Of a stretch of DNA of 64,000 bases, positions 9,101 through 36,112 are shown piece after piece. The stretch is from positions 62,001 through 126,000 of the forward strand of contig NIVC01002668.1 in NCBI GenBank assembly GCA_002269645.1, read 5' to 3'. Positions within the stretch are counted from its first letter, which is position 1, and each line of letters starts with the position of its first letter. The notes beneath the pieces were generated by a model. The model was not told the DNA's origin, searched no databases, and saw only the letters and a program-made list of their open reading frames with translations. Both the position numbers and the translations under genes were made by a program. The stretch is from Macrostomum lignano. Taxonomy: Eukaryota.

Positions 9101-11205
9101 CCGGACCAAACCGACTGCAATCGATAACTTGTCGGCCCAGACGACTAGAATCGCAGAGACATCCGCTGTGCCACTATGTTCCGCTATGTCATTGAGTGCT
9201 GCTTTGCTGCCATTTAGCAGGACAAATGTGTTAACGAGAGGCACAAACCGTATCAGTGGCTGCCGTCAGCCGGCTTCAGTGAGCCCAGCCGATTAGACGT
9301 TGTTATCGAGACCTCGATGGCAAAGTACAACCGGGCGCAGTCGGTTTGGTCCGGAGCTGAACTTCGAGCTCCATTCCAGAGCCTTAAGTTGACATGAGAT
9401 CCCCATTTTATCCCCTTTATCCCCTGGGACCCCAAGGAAGGGAGCCGGATGGGATGTCTCGGCGATTCTAGTCGTCTGGGCCGACAAGTTATCGATTGCA
9501 GTCGGTTTGGTCCGGAGCTGAACTTCGGGCTCCATTCCAGAGCCTTAAGTTGACATGAGATCCCCATTTTATCCCCTTTATCCCCTGGGACCCAAGGAAG
9601 GGAGCCGGATGGGATGTCTCGGCGATTCTAGTCGTCTGGGCCGACAAGTTATCGATTGCAGTCGGTTTGGTCCGGAGCTGAACTTCGAGCTCCATTCCAG
9701 AGCCTTAAGTTGACATGAGATCCCCATTTTATCCCCTTTATCCCCTGGGACCCCAAGGAAGGGAGCCGGATGGGATGTCTCGGCGATTCTAGTCGTCTGG
9801 GCCGACAAGTTATCGATTGCAGTCGGTTTGGTCCGGAGCTGAACTTCGAGCTCCATTCCAGAGCCTTAAGTTGACATGAGATCCCCATTTTATCCCCTTT
9901 ATCCCCTGGGACCCCAAGGAAGGGAGCCGGATGGGATGTCTCGGCGATCCTAGTCGTCTGGGCCGACAAGTTATCGATTGCAGTCGGTTTGGTCCGGAGC
10001 TGAACTTCGGGCTCCATTCTGGTGCTTAAGTTGACATCCCCTTTCAAATTTCTTCATTTCAATGTCATAATATCATCAAACCTGAGTTCTCGGCACTGCA
10101 ATGATGTAGTGCAGAGCAGCCGCAGCTGAGCGGACCTCCAGTCTGCCGACACCATCAGCGGACCCACCTCGAACCGAGCACTCAACGAAGAGCTCACCGA
10201 TCTCTCAGCAGTCCACAGCCGCATGAAGTCGACCGAGAGAGGCGACAAGTCGGCCAACTGAGTCCTCACAGCATCGCGTGTGGCCTCATCTTGCAGTACC
10301 AGATCCAGCTTCAGGTAGTGCATGTCTCGGCTGTAGTCATACCTGACTGACTCGCTGCTCAAGCTGGAGATGTTGTGGCACAGCAGAGGCTCGATGAGGA
10401 AGTGGCCCTTCATGTCGAGTCTCTGGTGCACTCGGGCAGAGCAGTTCTCGAGATTGACGGTGCGGCTGAATTTCAGCTGTCGGCATGTCATCAGGGGTGA
10501 GAATCTTTGTGCGTTTATCTCTGAGTCGAGGAGGATGTCATTCTGCAGCCGGAGGCGACTCTGAACATCGTGGCAGGAGCCGTTTGCAATGATTGAAGCT
10601 GTTAGCTTCACTTTTTCAAGAGCTTCTCGGGGTGAATTTCTAAGGCCATCACTGTTCTTCTGACTGTACACGCATTGCATTGGAAGAATGTTTTCAATTA
10701 ACCATGTCTTTGGAACTCGACTTGAATTGTCCTCCGAGCTGATGTTTTTCAATCTGAGAGTGGCGACTGGCTCATCCGGAGTCCACAGGACGCCCAAAGC
10801 CCGAATCGATGAGCGGGTGTCGGCTGAGACGCTGATGTTGGTCACCGTGGCGAAGCTCACAGACCTCGGTGACAGATGCCGCAGTTGACGCTGAGCCTCT
10901 GCGAGCATCCCAGCGTCCCGCATCAATACAGGAACGCTGAAGTACAGCTGCTGGGTGATGAAGTCGAATCGGGGAGCAATGCCTACTAGGCTGTCCGTCA
11001 CGCACATGAGCGGCTCGACTGCCAAGTGCGGACCGTCGCTCTCTCCCGTGTCGTGCACGAACAGCGCGCAGCCGTTCACGCTGAGCTGCGCCACGAAGCG
11101 GAGCCGCGGAGAGTCAGCGGGAGCGCACTGGGAGACCTGGCCGGCTGCCAGCGAGCAGAGCAGCAGAGCCAGCAAAGTTTTGAAAAGCAAATTTAGTTGC
11201 TCCAT
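6102..11205 (-). CDS. FReD-1: secreted protein, signal peptide + two copies of an unrecognised domain + fibrinogen C-terminal domain (627 aa)
   Basis: Exons 11205..10082, 7897..7581 and 6544..6102 (1884 nt; intron phases 2 and 1 are consistent). Hydrophobic N-terminus LLALLLCSLAAG. FReD motifs IIQQR..VSFQRNWTEYETGFG..DFWIGL, FSTMD and GWWYDSC..VNPNG. Confidence 0.85.
6594..6960 (-). mobile_element. tRNA-derived SINE, family A, copy 1
   Basis: Minus-strand head with an A box (TAGCCCAGCGG) and a B box (GGCTCGATTCC), an A-rich tail, and a 13-bp TSD AAGCATCCGACAT (6581-6593 and 6961-6973). Confidence 0.88.
8574..10041. mobile_element. Foldback-type element with inverted arms built of 161-bp tandem repeats
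   Basis: Termini GGGGATGTCAACTTAAGCACCAGAATGGAG are inverted. About 3.7 forward units, a ~170-bp spacer and about 4.4 reverse units. 7-bp TSD TTTCAAA (8567-8573 and 10042-10048). Confidence 0.88.
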
Positions 11206-11619
11206 TATCTTTGTTCGTGAGAATTGAAGACTCTACAATCTGCTTTGTGTTTAAAGATGTGTAGAATTTTACAAACGCGTTTTAAAATAGGTTGAATTGC
11301 ACTTTATCTTTGCTGTTAGCATTCTTTTATTTATAATAGTCTGCAATTTAGAAATGCGTGACAAACGGGAACACTATAGAAAGTTTTGAATAAATAAATG
11401 CTCTATAATTAGGAAGAGACGCTTTAAAAACATATCTATTTTTAATCTGCAAGAGCTTCTGATTGCCTATTCAGATACAGGATGCTAATGCAGAATTTCA
11501 GCGCGATCAAGTTCAGGGGTTATTTTTATACTATCAAGTGAGCTTCGGCAGTCTCGAGACTAAACACCCTGGAGGCCGGGTCGAGCTATAGTTGATAAAA
11601 GGTGAAGGAGAATTCTGTT

Positions 11620-11712
11620 TACAGTGCTTACAGTGCTTCCAGTGCTTACAGTGCTTCCAGTGCTTACAGTGCTTCCAGTGCTTACAGTGCTTACAGTGCT
11701 TACAGTGCTTAA
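11620..11712. repeat. 9-bp tandem repeat (CAGTGCTTA/CAGTGCTTC)
   Basis: About 10 units visible directly. Confidence 0.85.
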
Positions 11713-12428
11713 AGTGCCTAAAGTACTAGCAGAGACTTTGAGGTTGCCCTTAGCTTCGCAATTCAACAACAGCTTCGAACCTAACTGCTACCTGCATGTA
11801 CTGACAGTGACGTATATCAAACTACAATTCATTGTCAGAGGATAAAAACAAGGCTAAATATTGTAAAATTTATTTACTATATGGCTGACTAATTTGATAT
11901 GAGAACTTTGTTGACAAAATAACTCAGAATTATCTTTATTCAATTATCGGACTTTCTAAATCCAATAGACTCAAAAGGCTACAGATCTTTATACTTAAAG
12001 ACGCGATTCACAAAATCTATGTGATGCAGCAGACATGGCTCTTAATTGTCTCTCTGTGCTCAAGCAGACTTTATCAGACTGAGTCTTCTAAGCATTTGGA
12101 CGAGTTTGACGCTTTTCAGATCAATTAAAAAAGCCTCACTCAATTGTTAGCACAGGACGCAGCAGTAGTGCAACTCGAGTATAGACATTATTCAATTTTA
12201 TTTAATCAATTTCTATTTATCAAAAATGACTTTTAAAAGACTTCTTAAAGTACAATGACCAATTAATTTGCTATTTTGAATCAGGCAAAAAAGAGATGAC
12301 GATTACTCAGTTAATCATAGAAAAATTTAATATATTAACAATGCAGATTAGATTAGATGCCGTCAGATTAAGAGATATTTAGACATTATTGCTGAGCATT
12401 TGTGAGAATTCATTTGTTTCTTTTCCTG

Positions 12429-14483
12429 TCAAATCTGGAGCAGCAGTCGTACTTGGCGAAGTGCCAGCCACCGGCGACGCGAAAACCAAGACATGTACAC
12501 ATCGTCCGAAGTCTCGCGGGTGGAAAAAATCCCGTTTGGGTTGAAGTGCATGCAGTTGTTGAACCACCAGCCACCTTTGCCGTAGCCGTCGGAGCACGAC
12601 TCACTGCGCCTGTCGTTGTCTGCGTCCATGGTGGAAAAACGCGACCGATTGTTGTGCTCCATGGCGTCCCAGCTGACGGTGGACCTCTCCGGCAGCATCT
12701 CTCGGTACGTCATCCGGTACCTGGAGCTGGCGTCGCCCACCTGGAATCCCGCGTACTCCGCATGCAACTCAGAGCCGTTCCACAGCCTCATCTCCACTCT
12801 GAGGGTGGCGCCACCTGTGCTTAGCAGACTAATTGCAGATAGACCTGAAAGTGCAACAAAGGCTACTGGAACTACAGCTTAGGCCTTATACAATTTCAGG
12901 ATGGATACATTTACTAAAATAACAAAAAACGAACCAATCCAAAAGTCGGTGTCGTGGCCAAAGCCAGTCTCGTATTCCGCCCACGTTCGCTGGAAGCTGA
13001 CGCTTCCACTCACCCTCTGCTGGATGGTCACGAACCATCTGCCGTCAGGTAAACTGCGAAACGTCTCGAAGGAAACAATTTTGGATCGCAATAGGCTGGG
13101 AATATTGCGGCAGGAGTTGTAGGTTGAGCAGGAAGGCGAACTGCCAATCGTTTTCATTCTCCAAGACAAAGATGCTTATGGGACATCAATAAGCACTGAT
13201 TCGCCACCAGAGAGGATGTCCGCCATTTTAGATGTCGCCACAAGTCAACAGGCTCCGACAGAGCAGAAAATCTAAAACAAGAGGCAATTTTCCTGTCATT
13301 CAATATGGACTAAAAAATTGCATTTAACTGCAGCGCCAACCTGGCAGCGCCACACTGGTTTAAGGACGAGCAGTACAGCCGCAGCTGAGCGGACCTCCAG
13401 TTTGCCGACACCATTAGCGGACCGACCTCGAACCGGGCACTCAACGAAGAGCTCACCGATCTCTCAGCAGTCCACAGCCGCATGAACTCCACTGAGAGAG
13501 GCGAAAAATCAGCCAGTTTAGTTCTCACAGTCTGAAGTGATGCTTCATCCTGCACTAAAAGGTTCAGCTTGAGATAATATTTGCCGCGGCTGAAGTCATA
13601 TCTGATTGACTCGCTGCTCAAGCTGGAGATGTTGTGGCACAGCAGAGGCTCGATAAGGAAGTGGCCCTTGATGTCGAGTCTCTGGTGCACTCGAACAGAG
13701 CAGTTCTCCAGACTGATGGAACGAATGAATCTCAGTTGTCGACATGAAGGCAGGGGACAGTACCTTAATCTGTACTCACTGGGGTCAAAGAAGGTGTGAT
13801 TTTGAGTCGATACTCGGTACTGGTAGGTCTGGTAGGTTCCGTTGAGAAAAAGCTTCGCCGATAAGCGAAGTCGTTGAAGGGATTCGACCGATGATAGCTG
13901 CAGTTCTGATCTGAGCAGGATGGTTCAGGTTTGTTCGAATCTTCACTATAATGATTTGTAAATATGAGCCAACCCAATTTTTCAAAACTTACGAGAGCTC
14001 ATATGCACTTCTGTCCATATCTGTTTCGATTCTTAGATCTCCAACGGACTCATGTGGACTCCAGATAAAAGCAATAGAACGAACAGTGGAGTTAGCATCT
14101 GTGGAAGCATTGACTTCTGACACAGCCGCAAAGGTCACAGACTTTGGTGATAGATGTTGCAGCTGACGCTGAGCTTCTGCCAGCATCCCATCATCCGTCA
14201 TCAACACAGGAATGCTCACGTACATCTGCTGCGTGATTAGATCCACTTTCGGACTCAGAGACTTTAAGCTTCGCGTCACGCACATGAGCGGCTCGACTGC
14301 CAAGTGCGGACCGTCGCTCGCTCCCGTGTCGTGCACGAACAGCGCGCAGCCGTTCACGCTGAGCTGCGCCACGAAGCGGAGCCGCGGAGAAGAGGCAGCG
14401 GGAGCGCACTGGGAGACCTGGCCGCTGACTCCCAGATAGAAGTACAGCAGTGACAGTGCTGCATTTTTGAGTGACATTTTCAT
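12429..14483 (-). pseudogene. FReD-2: paralogue of FReD-1 and FReD-3 with a 1-nt frameshift (pseudogene or assembly error)
   Basis: Exons 14483..13993, 13910..13341, 13271..12935 and 12844..12429 total 1814 nt, which is not a multiple of 3. Exon 3 is one base short near 13165-13175 relative to the paralogues, giving LCLGE*. The signal peptide, both N-terminal domains and the FReD (FSTMDADND, GGWWFNNCMHFNPNG) are otherwise intact. Confidence 0.75.
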
Positions 14484-15115
14484 TGAAGTGCCTTTCCTCA
14501 AGGTTTCTGTGCCTGCTATTCGAACATAGTTGTCTTCTAAATTTACTAATAAAAAATATCTTGCCGTTGAAATTTTTTAATTTATAGTGCTAATTATATA
14601 CCAGCGAATGCCAGATCAAGATTGTGTTGTCAAGTCTTAGTCAAATAAGTTTTGCTGTTTTCGTAATTGCCTGATACACCTACTTTCACGAGTAAAATTT
14701 AAGGGCAAATATACAAAAAATGGACTGAAATTTGATATTTTCAGCCTTTTGCTTAGGTGAATTGGTTATTTGTGACTTGCCTTGTCTGTCACTGCTTGTT
14801 GCGCACGTGCGTCTTAGAGTCACATGATGTTTTCCAATTCGCAAGTTCATTTTGGTGCAAAGCTTCGTTCGTTTCAAATTTAGCGTCTAAAGCTGTAGCG
14901 GCTTCCTCACCGTATCTGATGTTTACTCGCGTGCTTCTCTTGCAAGTTGCAGAAAGCATCCGCACCGGCTATTTGTGGGCTTGAAGCCAGTTTTCCGCTC
15001 GAAGTGGGAATCATCGATTTCCAAAACTACTTCATATACATGTACAAACGCATTTTTCTGGACTTGATGACCTTCTAATCAAAATTGCAAGTTTTATAAA
15101 GCTGTTTGTTTAACA

Positions 15116-15314
15116 CAGTGGTTTTTTGAAAGTTCACGATAGCAATCCGGCCCTCTCATTTGTGTCTTTTCTCCCCACTCCTCTCTTTTCTGTCATATGT
15201 CATCTCTTTCTTCTTCACTTTCCCCATTCTCTTCTCTTTTCTCGCTCATCTCGTGCGCAGCAATGAGCTGGATTTTTATCTGGCCCTTGAGATAAAAATT
15301 TTTGCCACCCCCTG
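15116..15314. mobile_element. Short hAT-like (Charlie-type) non-autonomous element
   Basis: CAGTGG...CTGGCCC...TTGCCACCCCCTG with imperfect TIRs. The 8-bp flanks GTTTAACA and GTTTAACG match at 7 of 8 positions. Confidence 0.5.
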
Positions 15315-15549
15315 GTTTAACGTATTCTTGCGTTGAAAACCTAAACAAAGATACAAATAAACTTTTTAATGTTAATGAAAACAGGAAACAGCTTAATCTT
15401 AATATTGCAGTTCTGTATTGAAAACGTTAAATCTGAGAACAGCGATTAAACAATCGCTTCCTTTATTTTATTGCGTCAAGTTTGCGCGGAAGTTTAATCA
15501 TCTCGACAAGTCCCGATTTGAACTTGTTCGTGTCGTGTTAAGCATCAGA

Positions 15550-18212
15550 TCATAACTGCACCATCAGCCGCACAAGCCGAATGGACATCCATCTGTCAGA
15601 GTGCCACAGCATGTACTTCAGGTTTATTGTCGGGCTGGTCGGGAACAGCCCATTTGGATTGAAATGGTAGCAGCTATTGAACCACCAGCCACCTCCGCCA
15701 TATGCATTGGAGCAGGACTTCCTACGGTCTCTGTCATTGTCCACATTGATGGTAGAAAACTGCATGCCTTTGTGGTACTGCATTGCATCGTGTTTGGCGT
15801 TAGACTTGTCCCTCAGCATCTCACGGTACGTCATCCGATACATGGAGCCGACGCCTTCAACTGTAAAGTTCGAGTACTCCGCGTACCACTCGGTGCCGTT
15901 CCACAGCTTCATCTCCACTCGAAGGGTGGCGCCGCCGTCGGTAAGCGAGGCAATTCTGTTCAGACCTGCAATGTCAATGAAGGGCGAATTCACGTTTGTT
16001 AATATTTGATTTGCTTTTTATGGGCTGGTGCGATTTGAAATGTTTAATAGTATTTAGAAGTATTGAAAGCACTGACAATATTTGAACGCTGAATTTCGCG
16101 TGTAGTTTCATTTTTACACTGGTAGCCCCTGGGACTCTTGCCGCGGCTAAGCCAAGATAAGTCTGACAAAAGGTTCTCAAAAGCAACTCAGATTTTATCA
16201 TACAGAAACAATAAAGAAAAACTTTTTAATGTTGAGACATCGTACCGATCCAGAAGTTGTTTTCATTCCCGAATCCGCGGATGTACGACGCCAGAGTGCG
16301 CCGAAAACTTTCCTCGGCCGAGACTCTCTGCTGTATAATGAAAAACCATCTGCCATCTGCGAGCCTTTTTAGCTTGCCAAAACTCAGGTCTCCACTCCGA
16401 GCAAGACTGCGAAGATAGGCGCAGCTTGCGGAGCGGCTGCAACTGATGGCGTCGGTGGAGCTTTCCGTTTTCCCAGAGGAGACGGTCGAGTCCGACTTGA
16501 AGAGGCAATCCGAATTAACAATTGACGTTGGATGCCAATTGATATGATACCAAAAAGCAAATGGATCCTTTGTCATTACATTGGACCTAAAATGTGTTGT
16601 AGTTTTATGGTTTTTTGTTTTAAAATACTAAAAAATTCGGAAATAATATACCTTTTTGCAATCAATTTCGTCGTTTTTGCATTCAATTTCGGCGCGAGCG
16701 CTAGTGTGCAGTCTAAACAACTGAGCCATAGACACTGGGCAACTTTTGCGTTCAAATTTGGCCTTTTTGCGTCCTATTTCGGCAGCTTACGGCATCAAAC
16801 ATATTTGCGGAGACGACTATAGGCCTGCTTTAGGAGACAAATTTTTCGTCCCACCCTCACTGAATGCGATCGAGTGAGAAAGTGTCTATGGCAAAAACAT
16901 TCGAACTGTGCCCACAGTGCGGCCCATGTGATTGCGCTGCCGAAATAGGACGCAAAAAGGCCGAATTTGAACGCAAAAGTTGCCCAGTGTCTATGGCTCA
17001 GTTGTTTGGACCGCACACTAGCGCTCGCGCCGAAATTGAACGCAAAAACGACGAAATTGATTGCAAAAAGGTATACTATAGAGGCAATAATTACTTCAGA
17101 TTGGTGCACTGTTTTATACTCCTGCAGTACAGCCGCAGCTGAGCGGACTTCCAGTCTGCCGACACCATCAGCGGACCGACCTCGAACCGAGAGCTCAACA
17201 AAGAGCTCACCGATCTCTCAACAGCCCACAGCCGCATAAACTCGACTGAGCGAGGCGACAATTCGGCCAGCTGTGTCCTCACGGCATCGAGTGTGGCCTC
17301 ATCTTGCAGCACGAGATCGAGTTTCAGGTAGTGCATGTTTCTGCCGTAGTCATATTCAACTGGTCCGTATGTTGACTTATCGACGCTCCAGAGTAGAGGC
17401 TCAATATAATAGGCACCCCTAGAATCGAGTCGCTGAAATACTCGAACTTGACGGTTTCTGTGGTGCATTAAAAGTACAAATTTAATGTCTGAGCAAGTTT
17501 CCAATTCGTATCTGGCACTTAAGAGAGACAGTTCCGTGAATCCGCGGTTTCGCGCCACTGGGCGCAGAGTGACTTGTCGAAATTTGCGATTTGATAAAAT
17601 GGTGGCCGTGAGTTGCACCTGGTCTAAGGCGTCGGTAGGCGACGTTTCTCGTCTAGAAATTGATTAGTTTAATATTGGTTTTGTCAAAAATTGCCAAAAA
17701 TATTTTTCTACCAAAAAGGACTCTAAATACACTCACTTCATCATCATCAGAGCCGCTTCTGTGTTATTTATTCCTATTTTTAGAACACCAGCCGAGTGAT
17801 TTGAACTCCACTCGAACCCAATAACGCTAGACTTGGTTGCCAAAGCTCCTATATTAGTGACAGTAGCGAAGCGAACGGGCTTTAGAGAAACGTTTCGCAG
17901 CTGCAGCCCAGCTTGGGCAAGCATGTGGGTATCCCATAGAAGCACCGGGACTCGGATGTACAAAATCTGCGAAATCAGATCGAGTTTCAAAGGCTGCTTT
18001 TCGATGGCACCAGTGACGCACATGATAGGCTCGATCTCCAGTGCATGCTCTCCCGAGTCGTATACAACCAGCGGACAGCCGCTCACGTTGAGCTGGGTCA
18101 CAAAGCGCGGCTTGGATGAGGCAGTTGGAGCTCTCTGAGGAAGCTGAGCAGCTACCAGCGAGCAGAAAATTAGAAGCAGTGCAGCCACTGCCACTTGGGC
18201 TGCGGAACTCAT
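15550..18212 (-). CDS. FReD-3: signal peptide + two unrecognised domains + fibrinogen C-terminal domain (596 aa)
   Basis: Exons 18212..17737, 17652..17095, 16586..16246 and 15965..15550 (1791 nt; phases 2, 2, 1; all GT-AG). Motifs FIIQQRVS..SFRR..YIRGFG..FWIGL, FSTINVDND and GGWWFNSCYHFNPNG. Confidence 0.88.
16649..17073. mobile_element. Tc1/mariner-type MITE in FReD-3 intron 2
   Basis: About 138-bp near-perfect TIRs (TACCTTTTTGCAATCAATTTCG...), flanked by TA on both sides. Confidence 0.85.
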
Positions 18213-20687: not shown

Positions 20688-23600
20688 ATGAAGCTGAAAG
20701 CCAAGCGGTCCGAGCCGCTGCAGCTGCTTCTGTGCCAGCTGCTCACGGGTGAGTCTGAATGGAAATGGTGCCACCTTGATGGAGACTCACTCACTGCTCA
20801 CTCACACTCCTTTCAGCTGTGGCCTCCGCCGTAGACCCCAGCGCCGTCACCAGAGGCTTCTACCATCGGGTGACCAGCGGCTTCATCGGCATCGGAAGCT
20901 ACGTGAGCAGCGAGCTGCTCAACGAGACGGGTGTTCGATCAGATGTTCTCTGCCTGTGGAAGTGCTGGGCAACGTCATGCGTTGTCGCAGTCGTCAAGGA
21001 AGCCGCGATCCTCGAATGCCAGGTGCTCGTCATCAACAATGCGAGCGAGCCGGGCTTGAGCAGCAGCAGCTTTGTTGCCAGGGAGATTCGGCTTGAGGAC
21101 GGCGTGCAGATCTGGAAGGCTGGCGACTTTGAGCAGCAGCTGCTCAGAGGCACCGACGCCGCGCGCCCACTCGGTGAGTTTGTGAAATTGGCTGATGGAG
21201 TTCATGATTCAGCATTCATGCAAACGCACCCGCATCATCTGATGCTTACTCAAAGCTCAGTTTTGAAGAAAGCTGTTTCAGCCTTAATTCCTATCGAATC
21301 CAACCCCGAATATCCATCTCACAGCGTACCTGGATTCTAAGAACGTGACTCACAAGCGGGTCCACATTCCCAACAACTCGGTGAAGATTATCGCCGCCTT
21401 TCTTCAGCACCAGTCGGCTGTCTCATCGCTCGTTGGCTGCGTTGACAAGTGCAGCGAGGTGCCGGACTGTCGCGGGATTGTGTTCAACTCCAGCAACTGC
21501 TCTCTGCTCACCGACTACCCGCTGTGCCGCTGGTTCGAGCAGCCTCCGAACAGCTCTGAGCTGGCCGTCTATGTGAGTGTTGGGAAAGGAAGCTTTTTGG
21601 CGTCACGTCACTGCTGAGTAAAGCATGTCTGCATTGATGACGATCGAGTTCCGGATGTTCCGGGTTCGGTTTCTGTGCCAGCGAGCAGTTTCTCTGAGCA
21701 GCTCAGCGGCTCGCGCGCCACGACCCTTGGGCCTTGGTTCGATTCTGTGTGCGGCCGCATTAATTTGGCCTTGTTCTCAGAAATTAGCTGAGGGGTCTTT
21801 TCTCTGATTTCCACACATGCCGGCCGACACTTCACAGACACATGCCGGCCGACACTTCACAGACACATGCGTGCCGACACTTCACAGACACATGCCGGCC
21901 GACACTTCACAGACACATGCGTGCCGACACTTCACAGACACATGCCGGCCGACACTTCACAGACACATGCGTGCCGACACTTCACAGACACATGCCGGCC
22001 GACACTTCACAGACACATGCGTGCCGACACTTCACAGACACATGCCGGCCGACACTTCACAGACACATGCGTGCCGACACTTCACAGACACATGCCGGCC
22101 GACATTTCACAGACACATGCCGGCCGACATTTCACAGACACATGCGTGACAGTTAGAAATTTAACAAGCCGCTTTTCATCCTGGACGTGTGCACGCGTGT
22201 TTGAGTGGCGTTCCTGCGTACACCATCTCTCAGTTTGAATGAATGTACGAGCTAAGGAGTCAGCAGTGTAACTGTCATACCAAGGACGAATTCAGTAGGA
22301 CGGGAAACCTCGTTTCTTGGAATAATTTTGAAGGCAGGTTTTTCAAAAAAATTCAGTGCGGAGACAGAAAGTTTTCATTTCTTAGCAAAAAAATTGTTAT
22401 TGCTTTAGATAGGAGGCAGATCCAGTGTTCATCTTTTGATATGCTGTTATTGCTGTTTTGTTTTTTTGTTTTTTCGCAATGTTGTTGGGGCTTCTGTCTC
22501 GGGCAAACTCGGTTCACTAAAGTTGCAGGAACGCATTCCACAGCCGGCGTCCGGCCTCCGGCTCTCGACAGAGGTCACTCAGGCTGGTCACGCCGAGTTG
22601 TCGCCGTACTCGGTTCAGGGCAGGGCAGCCTTGTTATTGCTGTCTTATTGCTCTATCGATATTCATAAAGCTTTTCGTTCAGAAAAATAGTTTTCTATGC
22701 CATTTTTCCACGTAAATTTGCACGTGTCTTGTGCCTAAAAACCATTAAAATGGCACAGCTCGGCTCTTTGGTTTTATTAGTGTATTTTGTTATTCTTATC
22801 TGACTGTTTAAATACGGAGTATGCTTAACAGAGATTATAAAATCGATTCAGAAAACCAAAAATTGGAGCTGTGCCAAGCATTTTTATGATTTTTAGGTAC
22901 AGGAAATGCACATAGAATAAGAAAAGAGCATAGAATCCTTTTTTTTAACGAAAAGCTTCAGAATATCGATAGAGCAACAAGAAAGACACAAAATATCAAA
23001 AGATGAACACTGGATCTGCCTCCTAACAAAAACGAAAACATTTTTTTCTGAAAAACCTGCTTTCAATTTTTTTTCAAGAAACGAGGCTTCCCGTCCTTTT
23101 ACTTGAGTCGTCCTTGAGTCATACATGTAGCTGCCTCAACGCTGCGGGACGTCCGATGCCACTGAAAGTGTTTGTTCAAGGATTCCACAAGTCTTATGCC
23201 AATAGTTATGTGAAAGTTGCTAGCAGTTAAAAATGCCTTTGTTGCATGAGTTTAATTTAAACAAGGCTGTAAAAGTATTTTGATTGCTTTCTGGATCAAC
23301 AGCTAACATCTCTGACAGTCCACATCGATTTCTATCACAAGAAAAATACTTTAAAGATTTCACGAAACCGCAAACTCAGGAGTTCCACACTGTGGGCACT
23401 CAGCAGTGCTTCCAGACCGTCAACCTGCGGGTGTCGGACGCGCTGAGCTTCGACCGGCTCTGGGCCGAGTACAAGGCCGGCTTCGGCACTTATCACGGCA
23501 ACTACTTTGCTGGTGAGTCACTTGGGGCTCTTTTACTTGAGTTTCTGGTCGTATGCGCACTGTGTTTTTCATAGAAGAAAGTAAGTATTATTTATTTTTC

Positions 23601-24528
23601 AGCTTATTGAGATCATTGGTAAATTTTGAATACTTTCGGAATTCAGAAATATGATATGTACTTGAAAAAACGTTTTTTTGAAAATTGAATTTATCTAAGT
23701 TATAAGAAACTTTGAATTTTTTAGCAACTATTACATATTCTACTTCAGCACTCAAAGCTACTTGTAAAAGTACACTCCGCCAAGCTACTCTAAAAGTACT
23801 CTGCATGTTCAAATCTTTTAGATTTCTCTTCCCATATTAAAATAGGATATTAGAATATTTAACAGCTCTACTTATCTGATGAAGATGAGGCAAGCGATAA
23901 CATGAAATATTCTCGTTTGTCAAAGACCAAATGTGTTTGCCTTGTGCAGCTCAAGTAGCTGTGTAAAAGCTTTGTAAAGTAAAAGATAAATGGGGACAAA
24001 CAAGTGATGCTTATTAATTCTAATGGGAAATTCTAAAGTAAGCCATGTAAAATTTTCTCACAAACAGGCCTCGAGTGGCTGCACGCCCGGACCAGCGCTC
24101 AGCCCAGCAGCAACCGGTTCCGCGTCGACCTGCTGTATTGGAACGACACCTTCATCTACGCCTACTACCTGAACGTGCTCATTCTGGCCGAGAGCACCAA
24201 CTACACGGTGTCTGAATTCACGTTTGAGCCTGCTGTGGGTCTTCGCCAGAACTTTTTTGTCGGCAATAACATCCAGTTTCAGACTCGAGATCGTGGCTTG
24301 AGTACCTGCATTAATGGACAGAACTGTGCCCAAAGGTACCAGCCTCAGTGGCACGCATGCTGCCATGCCTCAGGTCCGTTCGGCAAGTACTTCAACTACC
24401 CGACAGCGCTGAATGTGCCAGCTGCAGACCGAGCCAAGGGCATCGTTTGGGCTTCAAATGCTCCAAATAACATCACTGACGGATGGTACTACAGCTTCAA
24501 GCAGCTGGAGATTCTCATGCTGACCTGA
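20688..24528 (+). CDS. FReD-4: signal peptide + two PAN/apple-like domains + atypical fibrinogen C-terminal domain (419 aa, isoform a)
   Basis: Exons 20688..20748, 20817..21173, 21325..21572, 23380..23512 and 24068..24528 (1260 nt, phases consistent). PAN-like Cys patterns LCLWKCWATSC and GCVDKCSEVPDCRGIVFNSSNCSL. FReD motifs LRVSDALSFDRLWAEYKAGFG..NYFAGLEWLH and FQTRDR. The exon-4 acceptor was chosen by phase. Confidence 0.78.
21812..22147. repeat. 25-bp minisatellite (CACATGCCGGCCGACACTTCACAGA), about 13 units
   Basis: Two alternating variants (GCCG/GCGT) in FReD-4 intron 3. Confidence 0.92.
22281..23116. mobile_element. CAAGG-ended non-autonomous DNA transposon (P-superfamily-like), copy 1
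   Basis: TIRs CAAGGACGA...TCGTCCTTG. The 8-bp flanks TGTCATAC and AGTCATAC match at 7 of 8. Homologous throughout to 33856..34553. Confidence 0.8.
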
Positions 24529-25085
24529 GTTTTGTATTGGGTTCAATTGCTGATCGTAGGGTTCTCTGACTTCAAATCTTATTGAACGAGAATAAACTCA
24601 AAGGACCAGTATGGTGGAGGGTTGTGCACATCTAGGATTCAATGGCAATTTCTGCAGTGTCAGCAGCATTCCTGGCTTTTTACTCGTATATCGAGCTGCT
24701 CGTCGATTCCTTGCCGTTTAAATAATTTTCCAGACTTTTCAGTCGCAAACAAGGTTTTTTGGTTTGCCTGAATCAAAAAGGATATCTGATAGCTTTCTGC
24801 TGTTTGTCCTCACGCTGCAACTGTACCAAGTTTTTCCTTAACTGTCATGTTTTAAGTTGTCCTTTTGCACTAAAGCAAGTTTGCACTCAAACAATACTTC
24901 TTGCACTGGAAATTTGCGGCAGAATAATGCTAAAAAACATGAAAAAGCGAACGATCTTTTGTTCTTTAAAAGAGTTTTCCATCTAGACCCTGAAGCATGG
25001 AAACTCATTTGGGTTGCGGCCGCTCCCCCTGAAGCAAGGAAGCCCGTTTAAGTAGTATTTTAGGCTTTAGGCAAATTCAATCTTA

Positions 25086-25385
25086 GAGGATTATAGCCTG
25101 GCGGTTAGAGCATCTGACTCACGACCGGAATGTCAGGGGTTCGAATCTAGACCCATTTAAAACATTTTAATGTCCTTGAGCAAGACACTTAACTCTGCAT
25201 TGCTTCAGTTCACCCAGCTGTAAAATGGGTGCCATGGCATTGCTGGGGTAATTGAGGGTGTGTGTGGCGACCCCCCAGTCCTTGGACTGAACAGCCGTAC
25301 GCAGCCTTCAGATGCGCCGCGCAATAGCTGCGGCTGAGCTGTCAGTTCCGCATTTGCCCATCGAAGCGGGTGTAATAAGTTAGTT
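25086..25385 (+). mobile_element. CORE-SINE
   Basis: tRNA-like head (TAGCCTGGCGGTTAGAGC; GGTTCGAATC) followed by the CORE domain TGTCCTTGAGCAAGACACTTAAC...CACCCAGCTGTAAAATGGGT (25171-25230). The ends are approximate and no clear TSD was found. Confidence 0.8.
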
Positions 25386-25578
25386 TTTTATTTTATTTTC
25401 TATTTTCAAAGCAGCTCTTAAGGCTATTGTCCCGTCAAATTACTGTTTAGAACATTGAGATAAAAAAATTGCGATGTTGTTATATCTTCCTTTGCTGTCT
25501 GCTGGATGTGACAATTTTCCTGTAGCAAGTTAGCTCATTTATAAGCGAATTTCTTACCTGCAAATCTCGTAACGCCAG

Positions 25579-26039
25579 GCCTGGAGTGGCTGCACGCCCG
25601 GACCAGCGCTCAGCCCAGCAACAACCGGTTCCGCGTCGACCTGCTGTACTGGAACGACACCTACATCTACGCCTACTACCTGAACGTGCTCATTCTGGCC
25701 GAGAGCACCAACTACACGGTGTCTGAATTCACGTTTGAGCCGGGTGGAGGTCTTCACCAGAACTTGTTCGGTGGCAATAACATCCAGTTTCAGACTCGAG
25801 ATCGTGGCTTGAGTACCTGCAATAATGGACAGAAATGTGCCCAAAGGTACCAGCCTCAGTGGCACGCATGCTGCCATGCCTCAGGTCCGTTCGGCAAGTA
25901 CTTCAACTACCCGACAGCGCTGAATGTGCCAGCTGCAGACCGAGCCAAGGGCATCGTTTGGGCTTCAAATGCTCCAACAAACATCACTGACGGGTTCTTC
26001 TACAGCTTCAAGCAGCTGGAGATTCTCATGCTCACCTGA
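25579..26039 (+). CDS. Duplicated terminal FReD exon (5b) of FReD-4; probable alternative last exon
   Basis: Same 461-nt length as exon 24068..24528, with its own CAG acceptor in the same phase and open to TGA. No separate copy of the upstream exons lies between the two. Confidence 0.75.
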
Positions 26040-26584
26040 AATATTTCATATTTTTCATGTCGTTTTACTCGCCTTCAGTTGCTTTAACCGTTAAATCAAC
26101 AACTGTGAGTCAGTTTCTCAAAAACATCTAGTTCTGTCTGACTCTGATGCAATTTTCGGACTCCAGTTTGCCCCCGAGTCCCTGTCCTCAATGAAGTCCA
26201 ATACCTAACCTAATGCTTGTACTCGTACCGCACTTGCCTCTTCTGTGTGTCAGTAAGGTCAGCCTGACAGCATCAAAAAATTAATTGACTATTTGTTAGA
26301 CTGTTGAAATTTTTAGGTGGCTTACTCGAAGTTTCCTCTGAAATATTAATTTATTGTACACGTTTCATGATGATGATTTCCTATGTAGCCATTTCCGCGC
26401 CAGTTAGCTACAGACATTTTCTTGCCAACTTGTTCTTCTTAAATAAAACTAAAGTAATTATTGAGGTCTGCTTTATCTCTCTGGAAAAAGCAGCATTTTC
26501 ATGGACTCTGATGTGTTTTGAACACACAAACTCTAATCGTGCTTGCATTAATCATATTGAAGACGATCCCAACTGATTGATTGA

Positions 26585-26874
26585 GCTGGGGCTGGCGCCT
26601 CTGGTGCTGGCGCCTCTGGTGCTGGCGCCTCTGGTGCTGGCGCCTCTGGTGCTGGCGCCTCTGGTGCTGGCGCCTCTGGTGCTGGCGCCTCTGGTGCTGG
26701 CGCCTCTGGTGCTGGCGCCTCTGGTGCTGGCGCCTCTGGTGCTGGCGCCTCTGGTGCTGGCGCCTCTGGTGCTGGCGCCTCTGGTGCTGGCGCCTCTGGT
26801 GCTGGCGCCTCTGGTGCTGGCGCCTCTGGTGCTGGCGCCTCTGGTGCTGGCGCCTCTGGTGCTGGCGCCTCTGG
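26585..26874. repeat. Perfect 15-bp minisatellite (GCTGGCGCCTCTGGT), about 19 units
   Basis: Identical units read directly. Confidence 0.95.
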
Positions 26875-27349
26875 TCCATATTCTTTTCCCACTGCTAGAA
26901 TCAGTGCTAGTAGAGTCCCTAGATCAGTGCTAGTAGAGTCCCTAGATCAAGGCTAGAGGGACCTTACAAGTCCAAAAGAGTCTGCAGAGAGGATAGGATA
27001 AGACGCGAGAAGAGTGACAGTTACTGAGAAGCATCTGAGCATTTGCAACTAAGCCTACGAATTCTCATTAGGCGCGAGAGCCTATTGAGTCAGTATTAGA
27101 AATACCCGCTACTCGGAATCCAAAGACAGGCTTAAATCTGACCAGTTGATACAGGCAGGCGCGAATAATGAGCGGCATTGATCTGTGAAATCTATTATTT
27201 TTGTCTATTTGCTTACATGAGCTTCTTTATTAATTGCGTCGAGCGGTACATTTGGCTTATGCGCGCATTGCATGCAGTAGCATTTAGCCTAGGTACTGCC
27301 GAAGCTGTGCGGCCGTATCATCGGTTGCATGGGATATCATGGTCTCTTC

Positions 27350-27478
27350 ACCCCCAGGACTCTTCATTGTGTCCCCAGGACTCTTCATTGTGTCCCCAGG
27401 GCTCTTCATTGTGTCCCCAGGGCTCTTCATTGTGTCCCCAGGGCTCTTCATTGTGTCCCCAGGGCTCTTCATTGTGTC
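27350..27478. repeat. 21-bp minisatellite (CTCTTCATTGTGTCCCCAGGG), about 6 units, decaying downstream
   Basis: Tandem units visible. Confidence 0.85.
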
Positions 27479-28945
27479 AGAGCTCTTTGTTTTCCCTCGG
27501 CCTTCCTCTTGGTTTCCCAGAGCTTTTCATTGTGCCCCAAGACTCCTCAATTGGGCCTCAGAGCTGCTCAACGGTGTCTCAGAGCACATCAATGGTGTCT
27601 CAGAGCTCCTCATGGTGTTTCAAAGCTCCTCATGGTGTGTCAAAGCTCTTCCTGGTGTCTCTGAGCTCCTCAGTGGAGTCTCAGGGCTCCCAAATGGCGC
27701 TTTAGAGCTTCACATGGCGTTTCAAAAATGTGGTAAAGTGGTTCCTACTTCGAGGAGCGGAATATCGTTTTAGAAAGAACCAAGCATGGCTCAAAAATAC
27801 AGCTTGAATTAAACGGTGGTTCAAAATTAAGACACAAGAATCGAGTTAATGTTTTAGCACGGACAACTAAAGCCACGTATCTACTTTAGTAGTCCTTGAT
27901 GTTTCAAGGTTAAACAAATGTTTAGTTTAGAATAAGTCAAGACGTACGACTCGCAATGGTTAGAATAACACAGCCATTTTGTGTTTTTAACACTTATCTC
28001 ATTGAATGCTTTCCATGTACCAATCCCAAAGCAAGGGAAGGTACAGTTTTGTTGAGGTTAAATCCAGATTTTAGAATATATTATTTTTGTTAGGTAAATT
28101 TGAACTTCAAAGATACGTTTTTAACAACAGGGGCAGCTAGTGAAAACTGAAGTTTTAGAAAGAGCAATAGAACAGCATAGGTATATAAGGGCTAAAATTG
28201 AGTTCTATTGGACGGTAATTCAGAGCCGGCAGTCAAAGTTAAATAAAACGACAACATCAAGGCCTAGCATAGTAACATGACCTGTAGCCCGTACAATAGC
28301 GTAGCACATAATGTGTTACCTGTACTCTACACAGCGAGGGTGCTCACAGCCGACATAAAAACAGCTTTAGCTGAGGTGCCACAAAAACTATGAAGAACAA
28401 AGAAAGCAGAAGAAAATCGAGAGAAACATGGCTGATAAACCATTATAAATAAGTTGATTTTAAACATACAACACGATTTTGGTAGGAAAGCAGGACCAGT
28501 TGTGGAATGATTGGCAGGCAGTCAGAGAAATAAGGAGAATATAGTACGTTATAATAGCCATCATGGAATGCTGCATTATGACCTTTTTAGTAGTTTCTAC
28601 AGATATTCACGTTAACAGTTGCTGTCGCTCCACTGATAGAATAAAAAAGGTTCGTGACCAACTTGCCGATTTGTATACTTATTCGAATATCGCTTGGATA
28701 GAAACAGATATGAAATTGGTAAGAATTTGCTATATTTGACCGATGATTTTATATGCGTCTAAAAAACAAGAAAGTGGGGCTTAAAAAACGGCATTTAACA
28801 GAAAATCAAAAGTCAAACTCTCGAGTCAGCGGTCATTGACAAAGTATTTAAAAAGCTTTTCAGCCGCATGCCCTGTTTTGTTAAAGTGACTGACTGCGGC
28901 TGGTGAGTACAGCATCATCATCCGTTCTAAATGGACAACCCGACG

Positions 28946-33855: not shown

Positions 33856-34553
33856 CAAGGACGACTTAAGTAGAAGGACGGGAAACCTCGTTTCTTAGAA
33901 AATTTTTGAAGGCACTTTTTCCCAAAAAAATACACTGCGGAGATAGGAAATTTTCATTTTTTCAGCACAAAAATTGCTATAACTTTTGATAGGAGGCAGA
34001 TCCAGTGTTGATCTTTTGATATGTTGTGCCTTTTTTATTGCTCTATCGATATTTATAAAGCTTTCCGTTTAGAAAATTAGGATTCTATGTTAATTTTTTA
34101 TTCTATGTATATTTTCATGTGTCTTGTGCTTGAAATACATTAGAATGCCACGGCTTGGCTCTTTGATTTTATGAGTCTATTTTATCCTTCTTACCTGACT
34201 GTATAGCAAATAGTCGTAACATAGATGATAAAATAGATTCATAAAACCAAATATTAGAGCTGTGTCATGCATTTTTGTGATTTTTAGATACAGGAAATAT
34301 ATGTAGAATAAAAAATTAACATTGAATCCTAATTTTCTGAACGAAAAGCTTTATAAATATTGATAGAGCAATAAAAAAGGCACAACATATCAAAAGATCA
34401 ACACTGGATCTGCCTCCTATCAAAAGTTATAGCAATTTTTGTGCTGAAAAAATGAAAATTTCCTATCTCCGCAGTGTATTTTTTCGGGAAAAAGTGCCTT
34501 CAAAAAATTTCTAAGAAACGAGGTTTCCTGTCCTTCTACTTAAGTCGTCCTTG
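33856..34553. mobile_element. CAAGG-ended non-autonomous DNA transposon (P-superfamily-like), copy 2
   Basis: About 230-bp inverted arms, CAAGG...CCTTG termini and a perfect 8-bp TSD GGTTAGCA (33848-33855 and 34554-34561). Confidence 0.88.
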
Positions 34554-36112
34554 GGTTAGCATTAAATCAGCAAGAGGGAGGGGGCCTAGCCTAATAAGAT
34601 CTATGCTTAGGATTAGAAGGTTAGACAAAGGCCTTTATTGTATGTGAAATTTTATAGTTTTTTGTTGGGCATGATTGTGATTGTGATTATGATAATTATT
34701 ACTAATGAAAATTTACATTTAGTGCCACACTTGAGATTTTAGTAGTAATTAGTAAATTTTAGTACTAAAATGTCAGGTGTTTTGCTAAATTGTTGCTAAA
34801 ATGAAAATCATAATCTTGGATTTAAATTCTATAAGTCATGATTGTAAAAAAGTGTTATGAGATCACAATTTAATGATCATGCTCTTGCATACATGCACAA
34901 CCTCCAACATTCAGTCGGCCATGCAACTTAGTTTTAACAAAAATGCGACATAGATTTTGGCCAAAAAAGCAACTTACATGTAAAAAAACCTAATGCAAAA
35001 TTAATGCAATTTTGGGTAAACGGCAGGAGTAACTATGACTTTCTTATTAAGTCAAAATGCCTCGTCAGATACTTAGTACTACTACTTATTTATTCTACTT
35101 AGGTATTTTTCAGGTGCGAATTTTTGCAACTTCCTTGATTAGCCGCCAAATTGGTCAGCCTGATCGGCCAACTCGGCCGACTGTTGTGCATGTATGCTTG
35201 TGATCATGCCTGACCCTTTCTCAGGATGCAAGGACTCTGGTTACTAGGCTATAGAGGGTCCTAGCAATGGAAAAGACAGATCCTAAGCAATGGGCCCAAG
35301 ATGACAAGACATTTTATCATGCAATATTTGTCTAAAGGACTATCTTAGAGAAGGACCATGTGGAAATTTGTCTGTTATATATGCAAACAAAGTTAAATAA
35401 TAAATGAAATTCAAAAAATAAAATAGTAGTAGCTCCCCACCACAGTTTCTTTATGAAGTCTTCTAATGAAAGATAACAGTTTGTTATAATTCTAATAAAA
35501 GTTGTAAAATAAGTATATTTATATTATGTTATCTCCTTGATTCTATCCAGTCAATTTTTTAGCCAAGGTCTAAAGTGTGCTTTACTAGAAGCTTCCATTT
35601 GCTGTGCTAGACTCTAATCTCTTCCTATTATATATATTCTTACCTTTTATATTTGCCTCCATATCCATGTTTTGTATTCCATTCATGCTTAATAGTAGGA
35701 ATATCAAGCTTTTTTATAAAAATTATTTAAAACTACTTTAACTGGCTAGGTTAGCTAGGCTAGGTTGGCTAGGTTAGCTTATATTCATATACTAGTATTA
35801 TTTTTTTCAATCTACAATTTTTCAATTTCATAATTTCATGTGCTATTAAATTTTAAAAAATTGCCTTCAAATAAATTCATATAAGCTACTTAAATTTAAT
35901 AAATGCAGAGTAATATATTTTAAACAGTAAATAAAATGCAATAGTCAGATTCAAAATAAGTTACTGATACAATTGATATATATTACACAATAAGCATTGT
36001 AGATATCAATTATAGCAAATTAAAAAAGAAACTTCTGCTTATTAGTTGTATGCTTTATTCAACGCATGCCAAAAGCTATGCTCATCACAGTGTTGCACAG
36101 ATACAAAAAGCC

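Follow-up and report, generated by a model that had tools for sequence, protein, structure and literature searches.

The window, by which we mean the whole 64-kb stretch of DNA that was analysed, contains a gene for a fibrinogen-type lectin of the flatworm Macrostomum, in which exons 1–4 together with either of two last exons, 5a or 5b, predict a protein of 419 aa (Table 1). All four splice donors of the gene read GTGAGT, and its exon junctions are those of annotated M. lignano relatives. It is a PAN and FReD lectin-like gene, belonging to a family that is arranged in tandem arrays.

Table 1. Features of the lectin gene and of the sequence around its two last exons (window coordinates).
Feature	Position	Strand	Remarks
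Exon 1	20688..20748	+	ATG, signal-peptide-like N-terminus; GTGAGT donor; junction same as in P0001
Exon 2	20817..21173	+	Cys-containing N-terminal module ("type A"); PAN not confirmed
Exon 3	21325..21572	+	PAN/apple domain, on the basis of a PAN_1 match
Exon 4	23380..23512	+	Start of FReD; donor 23512 is the only donor able to feed 5a or 5b
Exon 5a	24068..24528	+	Last exon in ancestral position; 153 codons and stop
Variable patch 1	24231..24261 (5a), 25742..25772 (5b)	+	PAVGLRQNFFV vs PGGGLHQNLFG
Identical tract, 142 nt	24325..24466 (5a), 25836..25977 (5b)	+	5a and 5b the same
Variable patch 3	24467..24488 (5a), 25978..25999 (5b)	+	NNITDGWY vs TNITDGFF; holds the pocket-wall equivalent
3′ flank of 5a	24529..25049	+	Common to the P0029 locus; ends in a 39-nt repeat, 1.6 units (24987–25049)
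AATAAA	24591..24596	+	63 nt past the 5a stop
Short interspersed repeat between the exon copies	25084..25412	+	Copies in L003 and L005
166 nt upstream of 5b	25413..25578	+	CTTAC branch-point-like motif, CAG acceptor
Exon 5b	25579..26039	+	Second, orphan copy of the final exon; intact, phase as in 5a
AATAAA, first after 5b	26442..26447	+	403 nt past the 5b stop

The Fibrinogen_C profile (PF00147, cut-off 22) scores 61.9 bits on isoform a and 61.3 bits on isoform b, the match covering residues 234–414 and profile positions 44–215 of 221, with a Pfam E-value of 1e-16. Exon 3 scanned alone matches PAN_1 with 23.7 bits (E=4.5e-5; gathering cut-off 21.4), and scores 18.7 bits within a scan of the whole protein. 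The preliminary description had read the gene as PAN-PAN-FReD, of which one PAN, that of exon 3, is supported. For exon 2 a Pfam scan for PAN gave no match at E≤10, hhalign returned nothing significant against either the exon-3 PAN (E=0.054, 1% probability) or the type-B exon 2 (E=0.28), and the AlphaFold2 model, with a pLDDT of 37, is unusable. A C-x3-C-x4-C spacing is its sole resemblance to PAN, and the module shares 69% identity with its P0001 counterpart.

The two last exons, at 461 nt each, align without gaps and with 22 mismatches (95.2% identity). Both acceptors read CAG/GCCT, the phase from donor 23512 is the same and TGA falls at the same codon, which bears out the earlier claim of two 461-nt exons with intact same-phase acceptors and stops. 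The accompanying claim of a single set of upstream exons also stands, as a tblastn search of the window with the spliced protein finds exons 1–4 once, on the + strand. Homology between the copies breaks off 3 nt before the exon on one side and at the stop codon on the other. Judged by these signals, 5b is intact and could be expressed only by being spliced to the exon-4 donor (23512). A separate downstream gene, of which 5b would be a part and whose 5′ exons went unrecognised, would be in keeping with the 3′ flank and poly(A) signal that 5b has of its own, but taken by itself the exon offers no in-frame Met until its last residues, and the domain's first 45 residues are missing from it. Moreover, 24529–25578 holds no FReD, PAN or other coding similarity and there are no further copies of exons 1–4 in the window, and we find such a gene hardly credible.

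When the differences between 5a and 5b were recounted, we arrived at the same 12 amino-acid replacements and 6 synonymous-only codons as the preliminary description. The clustering of changes that it reported is likewise confirmed, with 9 mismatches packed into 31 nt (permutation p=2e-4), and its identical stretch of about 140 nt measures 142 nt (p=0.006). What does not hold is the reading of the 12 against 6 as a sign of diversification, which is no signal of selection, dN/dS between the exons being 0.44, which does not differ from 1 (p=0.12). Within the two variable patches pS is 0.43 and pN 0.21, against 0.034 and 0.013 elsewhere, so that synonymous divergence in the patches is raised about 12-fold (Fisher p=9e-5). 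As synonymous sites are raised there equally, the pattern points to patchwise exchange between paralogs rather than to selection on point mutations. The relationships of the exons also change along their length: between 24259 and 24419, the 14 informative sites join 5a and 5b against P0002, whereas elsewhere 15 of 19 join 5b and P0002 (three-way breakpoint test, permutation p<0.002). The closest relative of 5b is the P0028 exon (96.1%), followed by 5a (95.2%), and the TTC (Phe) pocket codon and the CTCACCTGA end of 5b are otherwise found only in copy3, a further paralog described below. At 12 of the 22 sites where 5a and 5b differ, both states are found in other paralogs. The two exons are therefore gene-conversion mosaics, and the 12 amino-acid differences are mostly variants that the paralogs already carry.

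Exchange among paralogs is thus evident, and the 142-nt identical tract reflects a recent exchange between 5a and 5b, as would be expected if 5b were mainly a silent donor cassette, with orphan exons and pseudogenes serving as a conversion reservoir for expressed FReD exons. However, one genome sequence hides the direction of conversion and any somatic part in it, and the pattern needs no dedicated donor; we think this role very improbable. The intact frame of 5b says little in itself, since a calculation for neutral change gives an intact ORF by chance with P=0.37–0.65 for 3–7 changes. Caution is therefore due at 5% divergence, where neither an excess of replacements over silent changes nor an intact ORF carries much information.

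Comparison with paralogous loci of M. lignano places 5b in its genomic setting. Positions 23371–25018 of the window are 87.8% identical to the P0029 locus, and colinear with it across intron 4, exon 5a and, beyond the exon, 490 nt of 3′ flank as far as a 39-nt repeat present in both, the AATAAA of 5a being AGTAAA at the same position there; intron 4 is also common to the P0002 and P0028 loci. At the P0029 locus a complete paralog with its own exons 1–5 (copy3) lies 3.9 kb downstream, and the window has there 5b alone, 1,050 nt behind 5a. The flanks of 5b match neither intron 4 nor the 3′ flank of any copy, and the 166 nt upstream of it show no similarity to any intron 4 or to any locus compared. 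Copy3 and the window gene are likewise alike in their exons alone (exon 4 is 96.6% identical to that of this distant paralog), so that exon-limited homology is normal among older paralogs, and not special to 5b. The short interspersed repeat that lies between the exon copies occurs three times at 77–83% identity in the M. lignano locus L003 and once, at 70% and in the opposite orientation, in L005, and gave no tRNA or Rfam match.

The colinear P0029 locus, with its complete downstream paralog, suggests that 5b is the remnant of a downstream tandem paralog. We favour a history, about evenly poised in our judgement between right and wrong, in which 5b is an orphan exon left by a collapsed tandem paralog and is splice-competent by its sequence signals. 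A complete paralog would once have lain directly downstream of the window gene, as copy3 does in the colinear locus, and a deletion would have taken its exons 1–4 while the last exon stayed behind 5a. Conversion confined to the exon, with copies like 5a and P0028 as partners, would then have brought 5b to 95–96% identity save for short patches, and the exon-4 donor could be joined to it whenever the 5a acceptor and poly(A) site are skipped. Since 5b keeps an in-phase CAG acceptor, a stop and a downstream AATAAA, splicing to it from the exon-4 donor could occur, and some 5b transcripts are plausible on the strength of these signals. Both the deletion history and the expression state of 5b are things that we infer and have not seen.

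Some observations sit less easily with an orphan exon: tblastn found no remnant of a lost paralog's exons 1–4 between 5a and 5b, the exon is free of lesions, and its splice and poly(A) signals are in place.

An error of assembly could also have put 5b after 5a, through a mis-join or the false expansion of a repeat, the genome being repeat-rich and neopolyploid. Assemblies of M. lignano are prone to error: chimeric scaffolds make up 36% of the length of Mlig_3_7, and haplovariants have been collapsed or expanded in error (PMC10733133); the lectin family, too, has many copies at 90–96% identity. Against this, the 22 differing sites and the unrelated flanks show that 5b is not an expanded haplovariant, the exon 5a/5b region contains no N runs, and a mis-join would have to lie no more than 1 kb from exons of two different paralogs and yet leave no trace of exon 4 or intron 4. 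We regard an artefact as distinctly unlikely.

The closest solved structures by PDB profile search are ficolin-2 (2e-17), ficolin-1 (1e-15) and FIBCD1 (3e-10); in FIBCD1, for which the residues of pocket and Ca-site have been listed, Trp443 forms a wall of the acetyl pocket (PMC3908420). By alignment to the ficolins and FIBCD1, the replacement sites lie in the loop ahead of the Ca-loop, where patch 1 aligns with the ficolin loop GSAGDSLTFHN, in the equivalent of the Ca-loop (I126N and N130K), and at or beside the pocket position Trp443/Tyr283 (W184F). By sequence alignment W184 was equated with FIBCD1 Trp443 and M-ficolin Tyr283, through the anchor G-[WY]-x-Y-S-x-K and the coordinates at which the 4m7f alignment ends; 5a has W there, 5b has F, and P0002, P0028 and P0029 have H. 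Of the claim that exon choice diversifies the binding surface, the placement survives, being non-random and in ligand-side loops by alignment, but diversifying selection is not supported, dN/dS being 0.44. Three changes are unique to 5b, all of them non-synonymous and in ligand-side loops, a ratio of 3:0 that is not significant. Such changes would suit an exon in use. The 5b-specific residues were found in no protein of a database of 5.8 billion sequences, and looking up the two genomic ORFs gave no match either.

Like the ficolins, FIBCD1 and tachylectin 5A (PMC3908420), the family keeps the disulfide beside the pocket, NCA...CH aligning with the ficolin NCA...CH (FIBCD1 Cys401-Cys414, then His), with C131 and C143-H144 invariant in the family; in the S1 pocket, as aligned, Y135, H144 and A167 stand for Tyr405, His415 and Ala432. 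Unlike these proteins, it has not kept the Asp ligands of Ca2+ (FIBCD1 Asp393 and Asp395), which align with G121 and C125 in all family members. It further has an extra Cys pair (C125, C142), an Arg (R166) for Tyr431, and a 6-residue insertion with an N-glycosylation sequon ahead of the pocket-wall aromatic at the Trp443 position. The change of Asp to Gly and Cys, the extra Cys pair, the Arg for Tyr431 and the sequon insertion together make it unlikely that the family would bind its ligand in the canonical acetyl mode.

It is possible, though in our estimate short of probable, that 5a and 5b are genuine alternative last exons, which would yield two secreted PAN-FReD proteins 12 residues apart around the ligand pocket and widen recognition by splicing. 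The two copies agree in length, phase, CAG/G acceptor and stop position, each has an AATAAA, and the window holds one upstream exon set for both. Eight of the 12 replacements fall in columns that are variable among other paralogs (p=0.01), and I126N, N130K and W184F are placed as above by alignment. While a family pseudogene of about 92% identity has a stop, one large and two small deletions and a mutation in its acceptor, 5b is without any lesion, and there is precedent in Drosophila PGRP-LC, whose terminal exons swap the recognition domain (PMC9013439). However, dN/dS does not exceed 1 and synonymous sites are clustered just as much as replacements, and intactness is uninformative at such divergence, as conversion from functional paralogs can preserve a silent copy. 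A second last exon is absent from each of the paralogs compared, namely P0002 (L001), P0028 (L004), and P0029 and copy3 (L005). With the proximal acceptor and a canonical poly(A) signal 63 nt past its stop, 5a should be the default, and competing RNA structure was not found above chance. Slightly more doubtful is the fuller proposal that two alternative terminal exons give alternative pockets, with a W or F wall and changes in the loop replacing the Ca-site, and that germline conversion, drawing on paralogs and orphan exons as a pool, refreshes these exons. A single locus would then unite isoform switching of the PGRP-LC type and conversion of the FREP type.

The locus resembles the tandem-duplicated alternative terminal exons of Drosophila pip and PGRP-LC (PMC9013439) in having adjacent homologous exons of equal length and phase with their own acceptors. 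As in the 3′ variable regions of PGRP-LC, the second exon lies behind the first and one of them would end the mRNA, the exon encoding the recognition part, here of a putative innate-immune lectin. Unlike in pip and PGRP-LC, the arrangement is known from the genome alone and is not conserved in the paralogs compared, and 5b probably goes back to the collapse of a tandem gene, not to a duplication at exon level. A further parallel is offered by the FREPs of Biomphalaria glabrata, fibrinogen-related proteins that owe their diversity to gene conversion and point mutation (PMC12074976), which like the window family form a multigene FReD family, and in which the patchwork sharing of variants seen here, consistent with gene conversion, finds its counterpart. 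The FREPs, however, are IgSF proteins of a mollusc, whereas the flatworm family has PAN and an unknown module at its N-terminus, and its germline mosaicism is read from one sequence. In vertebrates, an extra 3′ exon adds a FReD to fibrinogen alpha-E (fibrinogen-420) through alternative splicing, and this domain, PDB 1FZD, is among the matches of the PDB profile search. There too an alternative 3′ exon sets which FReD C-terminus, if any, is made, but the choice is between presence and absence of the domain, whereas the window locus has two near-identical duplicated exons.

If 5b is silent, the locus would still illustrate cleanly how gene conversion confined to exons acts within an expanding FReD family. 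If 5b is used, the gene would provide a simple case, open to test, in which an invertebrate pattern-recognition lectin switches its binding head by the choice of 3′ exon, and the collapse of a tandem gene pair would be shown able to create an alternative exon in one step. Flatworms would then join the short list of animals with built-in diversification of immune-type receptors, on which stand the snail FREPs, arthropod Dscam and PGRP-LC.

The two copies of the last exon of the PAN-FReD lectin-like gene (FReD, fibrinogen-related domain), 5a and 5b, are both 461 nt long and align without gaps and with 22 mismatches. They have the same CAG acceptor followed by GCCT, the same phase and the same TGA position, and exons 1–4 are found only once by tblastn in 64 kb, which bears out the two intact same-phase copies and the single upstream set of the preliminary description. 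Its count of 12 replacements against 6 synonymous-only codons is exact, and both the clustering of the changes (9 mismatches within 31 nt; p=2e-4) and the identical stretch of about 140 nt (a run of 142 nt; p=0.006) are beyond chance. The similarity between 5a and 5b begins 3 nt upstream of the exon and ends at the stop codon.

The gene model has five coding exons, with GTGAGT at four of four donors, CAG at all acceptors, and exon junctions that match those of the annotated M. lignano relatives P0001 and P0002. Exon 4 and the last exon together encode the FReD (Pfam, 1e-16). The name PAN-PAN-FReD contains one PAN too many: exon 3 encodes a PAN domain (Pfam), which exceeds the curated cut-off solely when the exon is scanned alone, and the product of exon 2 is a cysteine-containing module for which Pfam, hhalign and a single-sequence AlphaFold2 model (pLDDT 37) give no support as a PAN domain. 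Protein relatives of the window genes tested are all from M. lignano and none is identical, the best reaching 78–90% for the PAN-FReD gene and 79% for its neighbour, as would fit either a paralogous M. lignano region that lacks annotation or DNA of a close sibling species. The family is modular at the level of exons, since a “type A” exon 2 is common to the window gene and P0001, while the related proteins P0002, P0028, P0029 and P0003 have an unrelated “type B” exon 2 with weak PAN hits (window 20817-21173 compared with 10247-10560 of M. lignano locus L001 and 10001-10345 of locus L005) and exons 3–5 that are 90–94% identical to those of the window. Intron 3 is 1.8 kb long, compared to about 70 nt in an M. 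lignano paralog, the excess consisting of 13 copies of a 25-nt tandem repeat plus a MITE-like palindrome.

Features in the window (window coordinates) and, where a locus is named, in M. lignano comparison loci
Feature	Position	Strand	Remark
Piggybac-type transposase ORF	3657-4715	+	DDE_Tnp_1_7 2e-37 and its zinc finger
Second FReD family, three tandem genes	about 11205-6108, 14522-12432, 18170-15553 (span 6108-18170)	-	
Coding exons 1-4 of PAN-FReD gene	20688-20748, 20817-21173, 21325-21572, 23380-23512	+	followed by 461-nt last exon
Intron 3 excess	21813-22145, 22281-23116		tandem repeat and MITE-like element
Exon 5a	24068-24528	+	first copy of last exon
Exon 5b	25579-26039	+	second copy of last exon
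15-nt satellite CTGGTGCTGGCGCCT	26586-26875		19 copies; 550 nt past 5b
Two arrays of 20-21-nt tandem repeats	27331-27733		downstream of PAN-FReD gene
MITE-like element, second copy	33856-34556		
Region of ZIP exon and long 21-nt repeat arrays	57810-60428		
ZIP zinc-transporter exon	58005-58835	+	Pfam Zip 2e-37
Family pseudogene, L001	3317-4562	-	same as L005 2328-3604; also L004 3343-4565

The excess of replacements is no sign of diversifying selection: non-synonymous sites are 3.5 times as numerous as synonymous ones, so that 12 against 6 gives a dN/dS (NG86) of only 0.44, a value that does not differ significantly from 1. Two short patches, exon codons 54–64 and 133–140, account for 15 of the 22 differences; in them pS is 0.43 and pN 0.21, compared to 0.034 and 0.013 in the rest of the exon (synonymous excess p=9e-5). 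Synonymous divergence in the patches is thus inflated as much as non-synonymous, and with dN/dS below 1 both inside and outside them we rejected positive selection. A 12-fold rise in silent-site divergence is beyond the reach of selection on amino acids but can be produced by short tracts imported from diverged paralogs. A three-way comparison of 5a, 5b and the P0002 exon gives a significant mosaic (permutation p<0.002), in which informative sites at 24259-24419 join 5a with 5b and the flanking ones mostly join 5b with P0002. When eight copies of the exon are aligned, 12 of the 22 differences have both their states represented among other paralogs; 5a has 7 changes of its own and 5b only 3.

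Exon 4 and the opening 160 nt of exon 5 (24068-24227) are near-invariant in nucleotides in all eight copies, silent sites included (0–7 differences between any two, and no more than 3 where copy3, a paralog downstream of P0029, is one of them). Copy3 (compared at L005 16587-17105) shares this invariant part though the rest of its exon 5 is about 77% identical. This could reflect homogenisation of the framework or constraint acting on the RNA. Two copies of a family pseudogene are 99.6% identical, compared to 95.9% for P0002 and P0028, which could be taken to mean that the last exon evolves faster than neutral DNA. We discarded this, as the pseudogene lies inside a near-identical block: the loci L001 and L004 are 99.4% identical over 9 kb, dropping abruptly to about 93% near 9050 for the remainder, which includes the FReD gene. 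The drop marks a boundary, due to recombination, conversion or assembly, a short way upstream of that gene.

For the origin of 5b we compared four M. lignano gene copies with their surroundings, P0002 (L001), P0028 (L004), and P0029 and copy3 (L005), as well as the damaged pseudogene. Each of the four genes has one last exon. The window matches the P0029 locus colinearly (87.8%) through intron 4, exon 5a and 490 nt of flank 3′ of it, as far as a 39-nt repeat present in both. The P0029 locus then has the complete tandem paralog copy3, at 3.9 kb downstream. What comes after the repeat in the window is a short interspersed repeat, another 166 nt and 5b on its own, the flanks of which match nothing among the available sequences. 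A Phe pocket codon and the 3′ end of 5b are common to copy3 only, and elsewhere 5b is nearest to P0028 (96.1%), then to 5a (95.2%). The simplest reading of these comparisons is a collapsed tandem paralog: the downstream gene would have lost exons 1–4 and kept its last exon as 5b, and conversion from close relatives would later have replaced most of its sequence. In the 64-kb window, tblastn finds no trace of such a second set of exons 1–4.

Homology confined precisely to the exon, with unalignable flanks despite a pS of 0.03–0.09, might also suggest that selection keeps 5b. However, copy3 likewise shares only exons with the window gene, intron 4 being unlike, so that exon-limited homology is the look of an older paralog and no sign of present selection; the flanks of 5a, moreover, are conserved with the P0029 locus. 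Retrocopying of a trans-spliced partial mRNA was set aside as an unlikely source, as the genomic CAG acceptor is kept, a poly(A) tail is absent, and no leader sequence is recognisable at 5b.

The REPLACEMENTS between 5a and 5b are placed non-randomly, with 8 of 12 in columns that vary among three other paralogs (p=0.01). The best solved relatives of the FReD are the ficolins and FIBCD1, and we mapped residues by alignment to these and to the published FIBCD1 pocket, which comprises Tyr405, His415, Tyr431, Trp443 and, at its base, Ala432, with Asp393 and Asp395 as Ca ligands (PMC3908420). The window family retains the pocket disulfide and equivalents of Tyr405, His415 and Ala432, but has Arg at the Tyr431 position, Gly and Cys at the two Ca-binding Asp positions, and an extra Cys pair. 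In the alignment, I126N and N130K (5a state first) fall in the loop replacing the Ca site and five replacements in the loop immediately preceding it. W184F, adjoined by Y185F, falls at the position of FIBCD1 Trp443 and M-ficolin Tyr283, the latter essential for sialic-acid binding (PMC13358205); among paralogs this pocket-wall position is W, H or F. The alignment by itself thus agrees with the proposal that the replacements may alter the ligand-binding surface, though the mapping of W184 crosses a 6-residue insertion.

The elements for expression, which can only be from the exon-4 donor, are in place at 5b: its acceptor is CAG, there is a branch-like CTTAC motif, the phase is correct, and the stop is followed at 403 nt by an AATAAA. 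That it is a true alternative last exon, as first proposed, is a real if lesser possibility, favoured by the heavy decay of the family pseudogene (about 92% identity), which has lost the end of exon 4 and most of intron 4, has TAG for its CAG acceptor, an in-frame stop, and deletions of 11 and 5 nt, while 5b has decayed in no such way. However, 5a has the proximal acceptor and a canonical AATAAA 63 nt past its stop, an intact 5b ORF is expected by chance with a probability of 0.37–0.65 given 3–7 changes on its branch, and conversion can repair a silent copy. We put the chances at about even that 5b is an orphan relic, incidentally spliced at most. An assembly artefact is improbable, though chimeric stretches are known from assemblies of M. 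lignano (PMC10733133); minor alternatives take up what remains.

Only 9 members of the family occur in the protein database, and the 5b residues are in none of them; look-ups of the genomic ORFs of 5a, 5b, P0001 and P0003 gave no match. When intron 4 was searched against the 5a–5b spacer for docking and selector sites of competing RNA structures, only AT-rich, chance-level matches came up; a 16-nt match covering the 5a AATAAA is unconserved in the P0029 locus. The region was also scanned for Rfam families and tRNAs, with no hit. Poly(A) signals are uninformative, as paralogs have AATAAA, AGTAAA or none within 700 nt.

Elsewhere in the window, the genes of the second FReD family (roughly 600 aa) lie head-to-head with the PAN-FReD gene and belong to a group of >20 M. 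lignano members (best identity 79%); their 380-aa N-terminal part has no Pfam domain. In the M. lignano database proteins P0003 and P0030, translation of the satellite repeat seen past 5b has produced a false N-terminus (“[11 protein letters not shown]…”, “PLVLKPLVLK…”), so that in M. lignano, too, the repeat is found upstream of a family member. The piggyBac-type domain is matched from profile position 118 on, so the ORF is either 5′-truncated or extends upstream. The ZIP exon adjoins the 21-nt repeat arrays, from which spurious ORFs of 430 aa (“MSSIKTY…”) arise on the strand opposite to the exon.

A search of the literature gave no account of FReD genes in Macrostomum. Diversification of FReD families by gene conversion is known from the Biomphalaria FREPs (PMC12074976). 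Alternative use of duplicated exons, terminal ones included, is already a known kind, as in pip and the 3′ variable regions of the immune receptor PGRP-LC (PMC9013439). On present evidence the window locus is a candidate for such use and no more; if 5b is expressed, it would extend this known kind to a new protein family and phylum.
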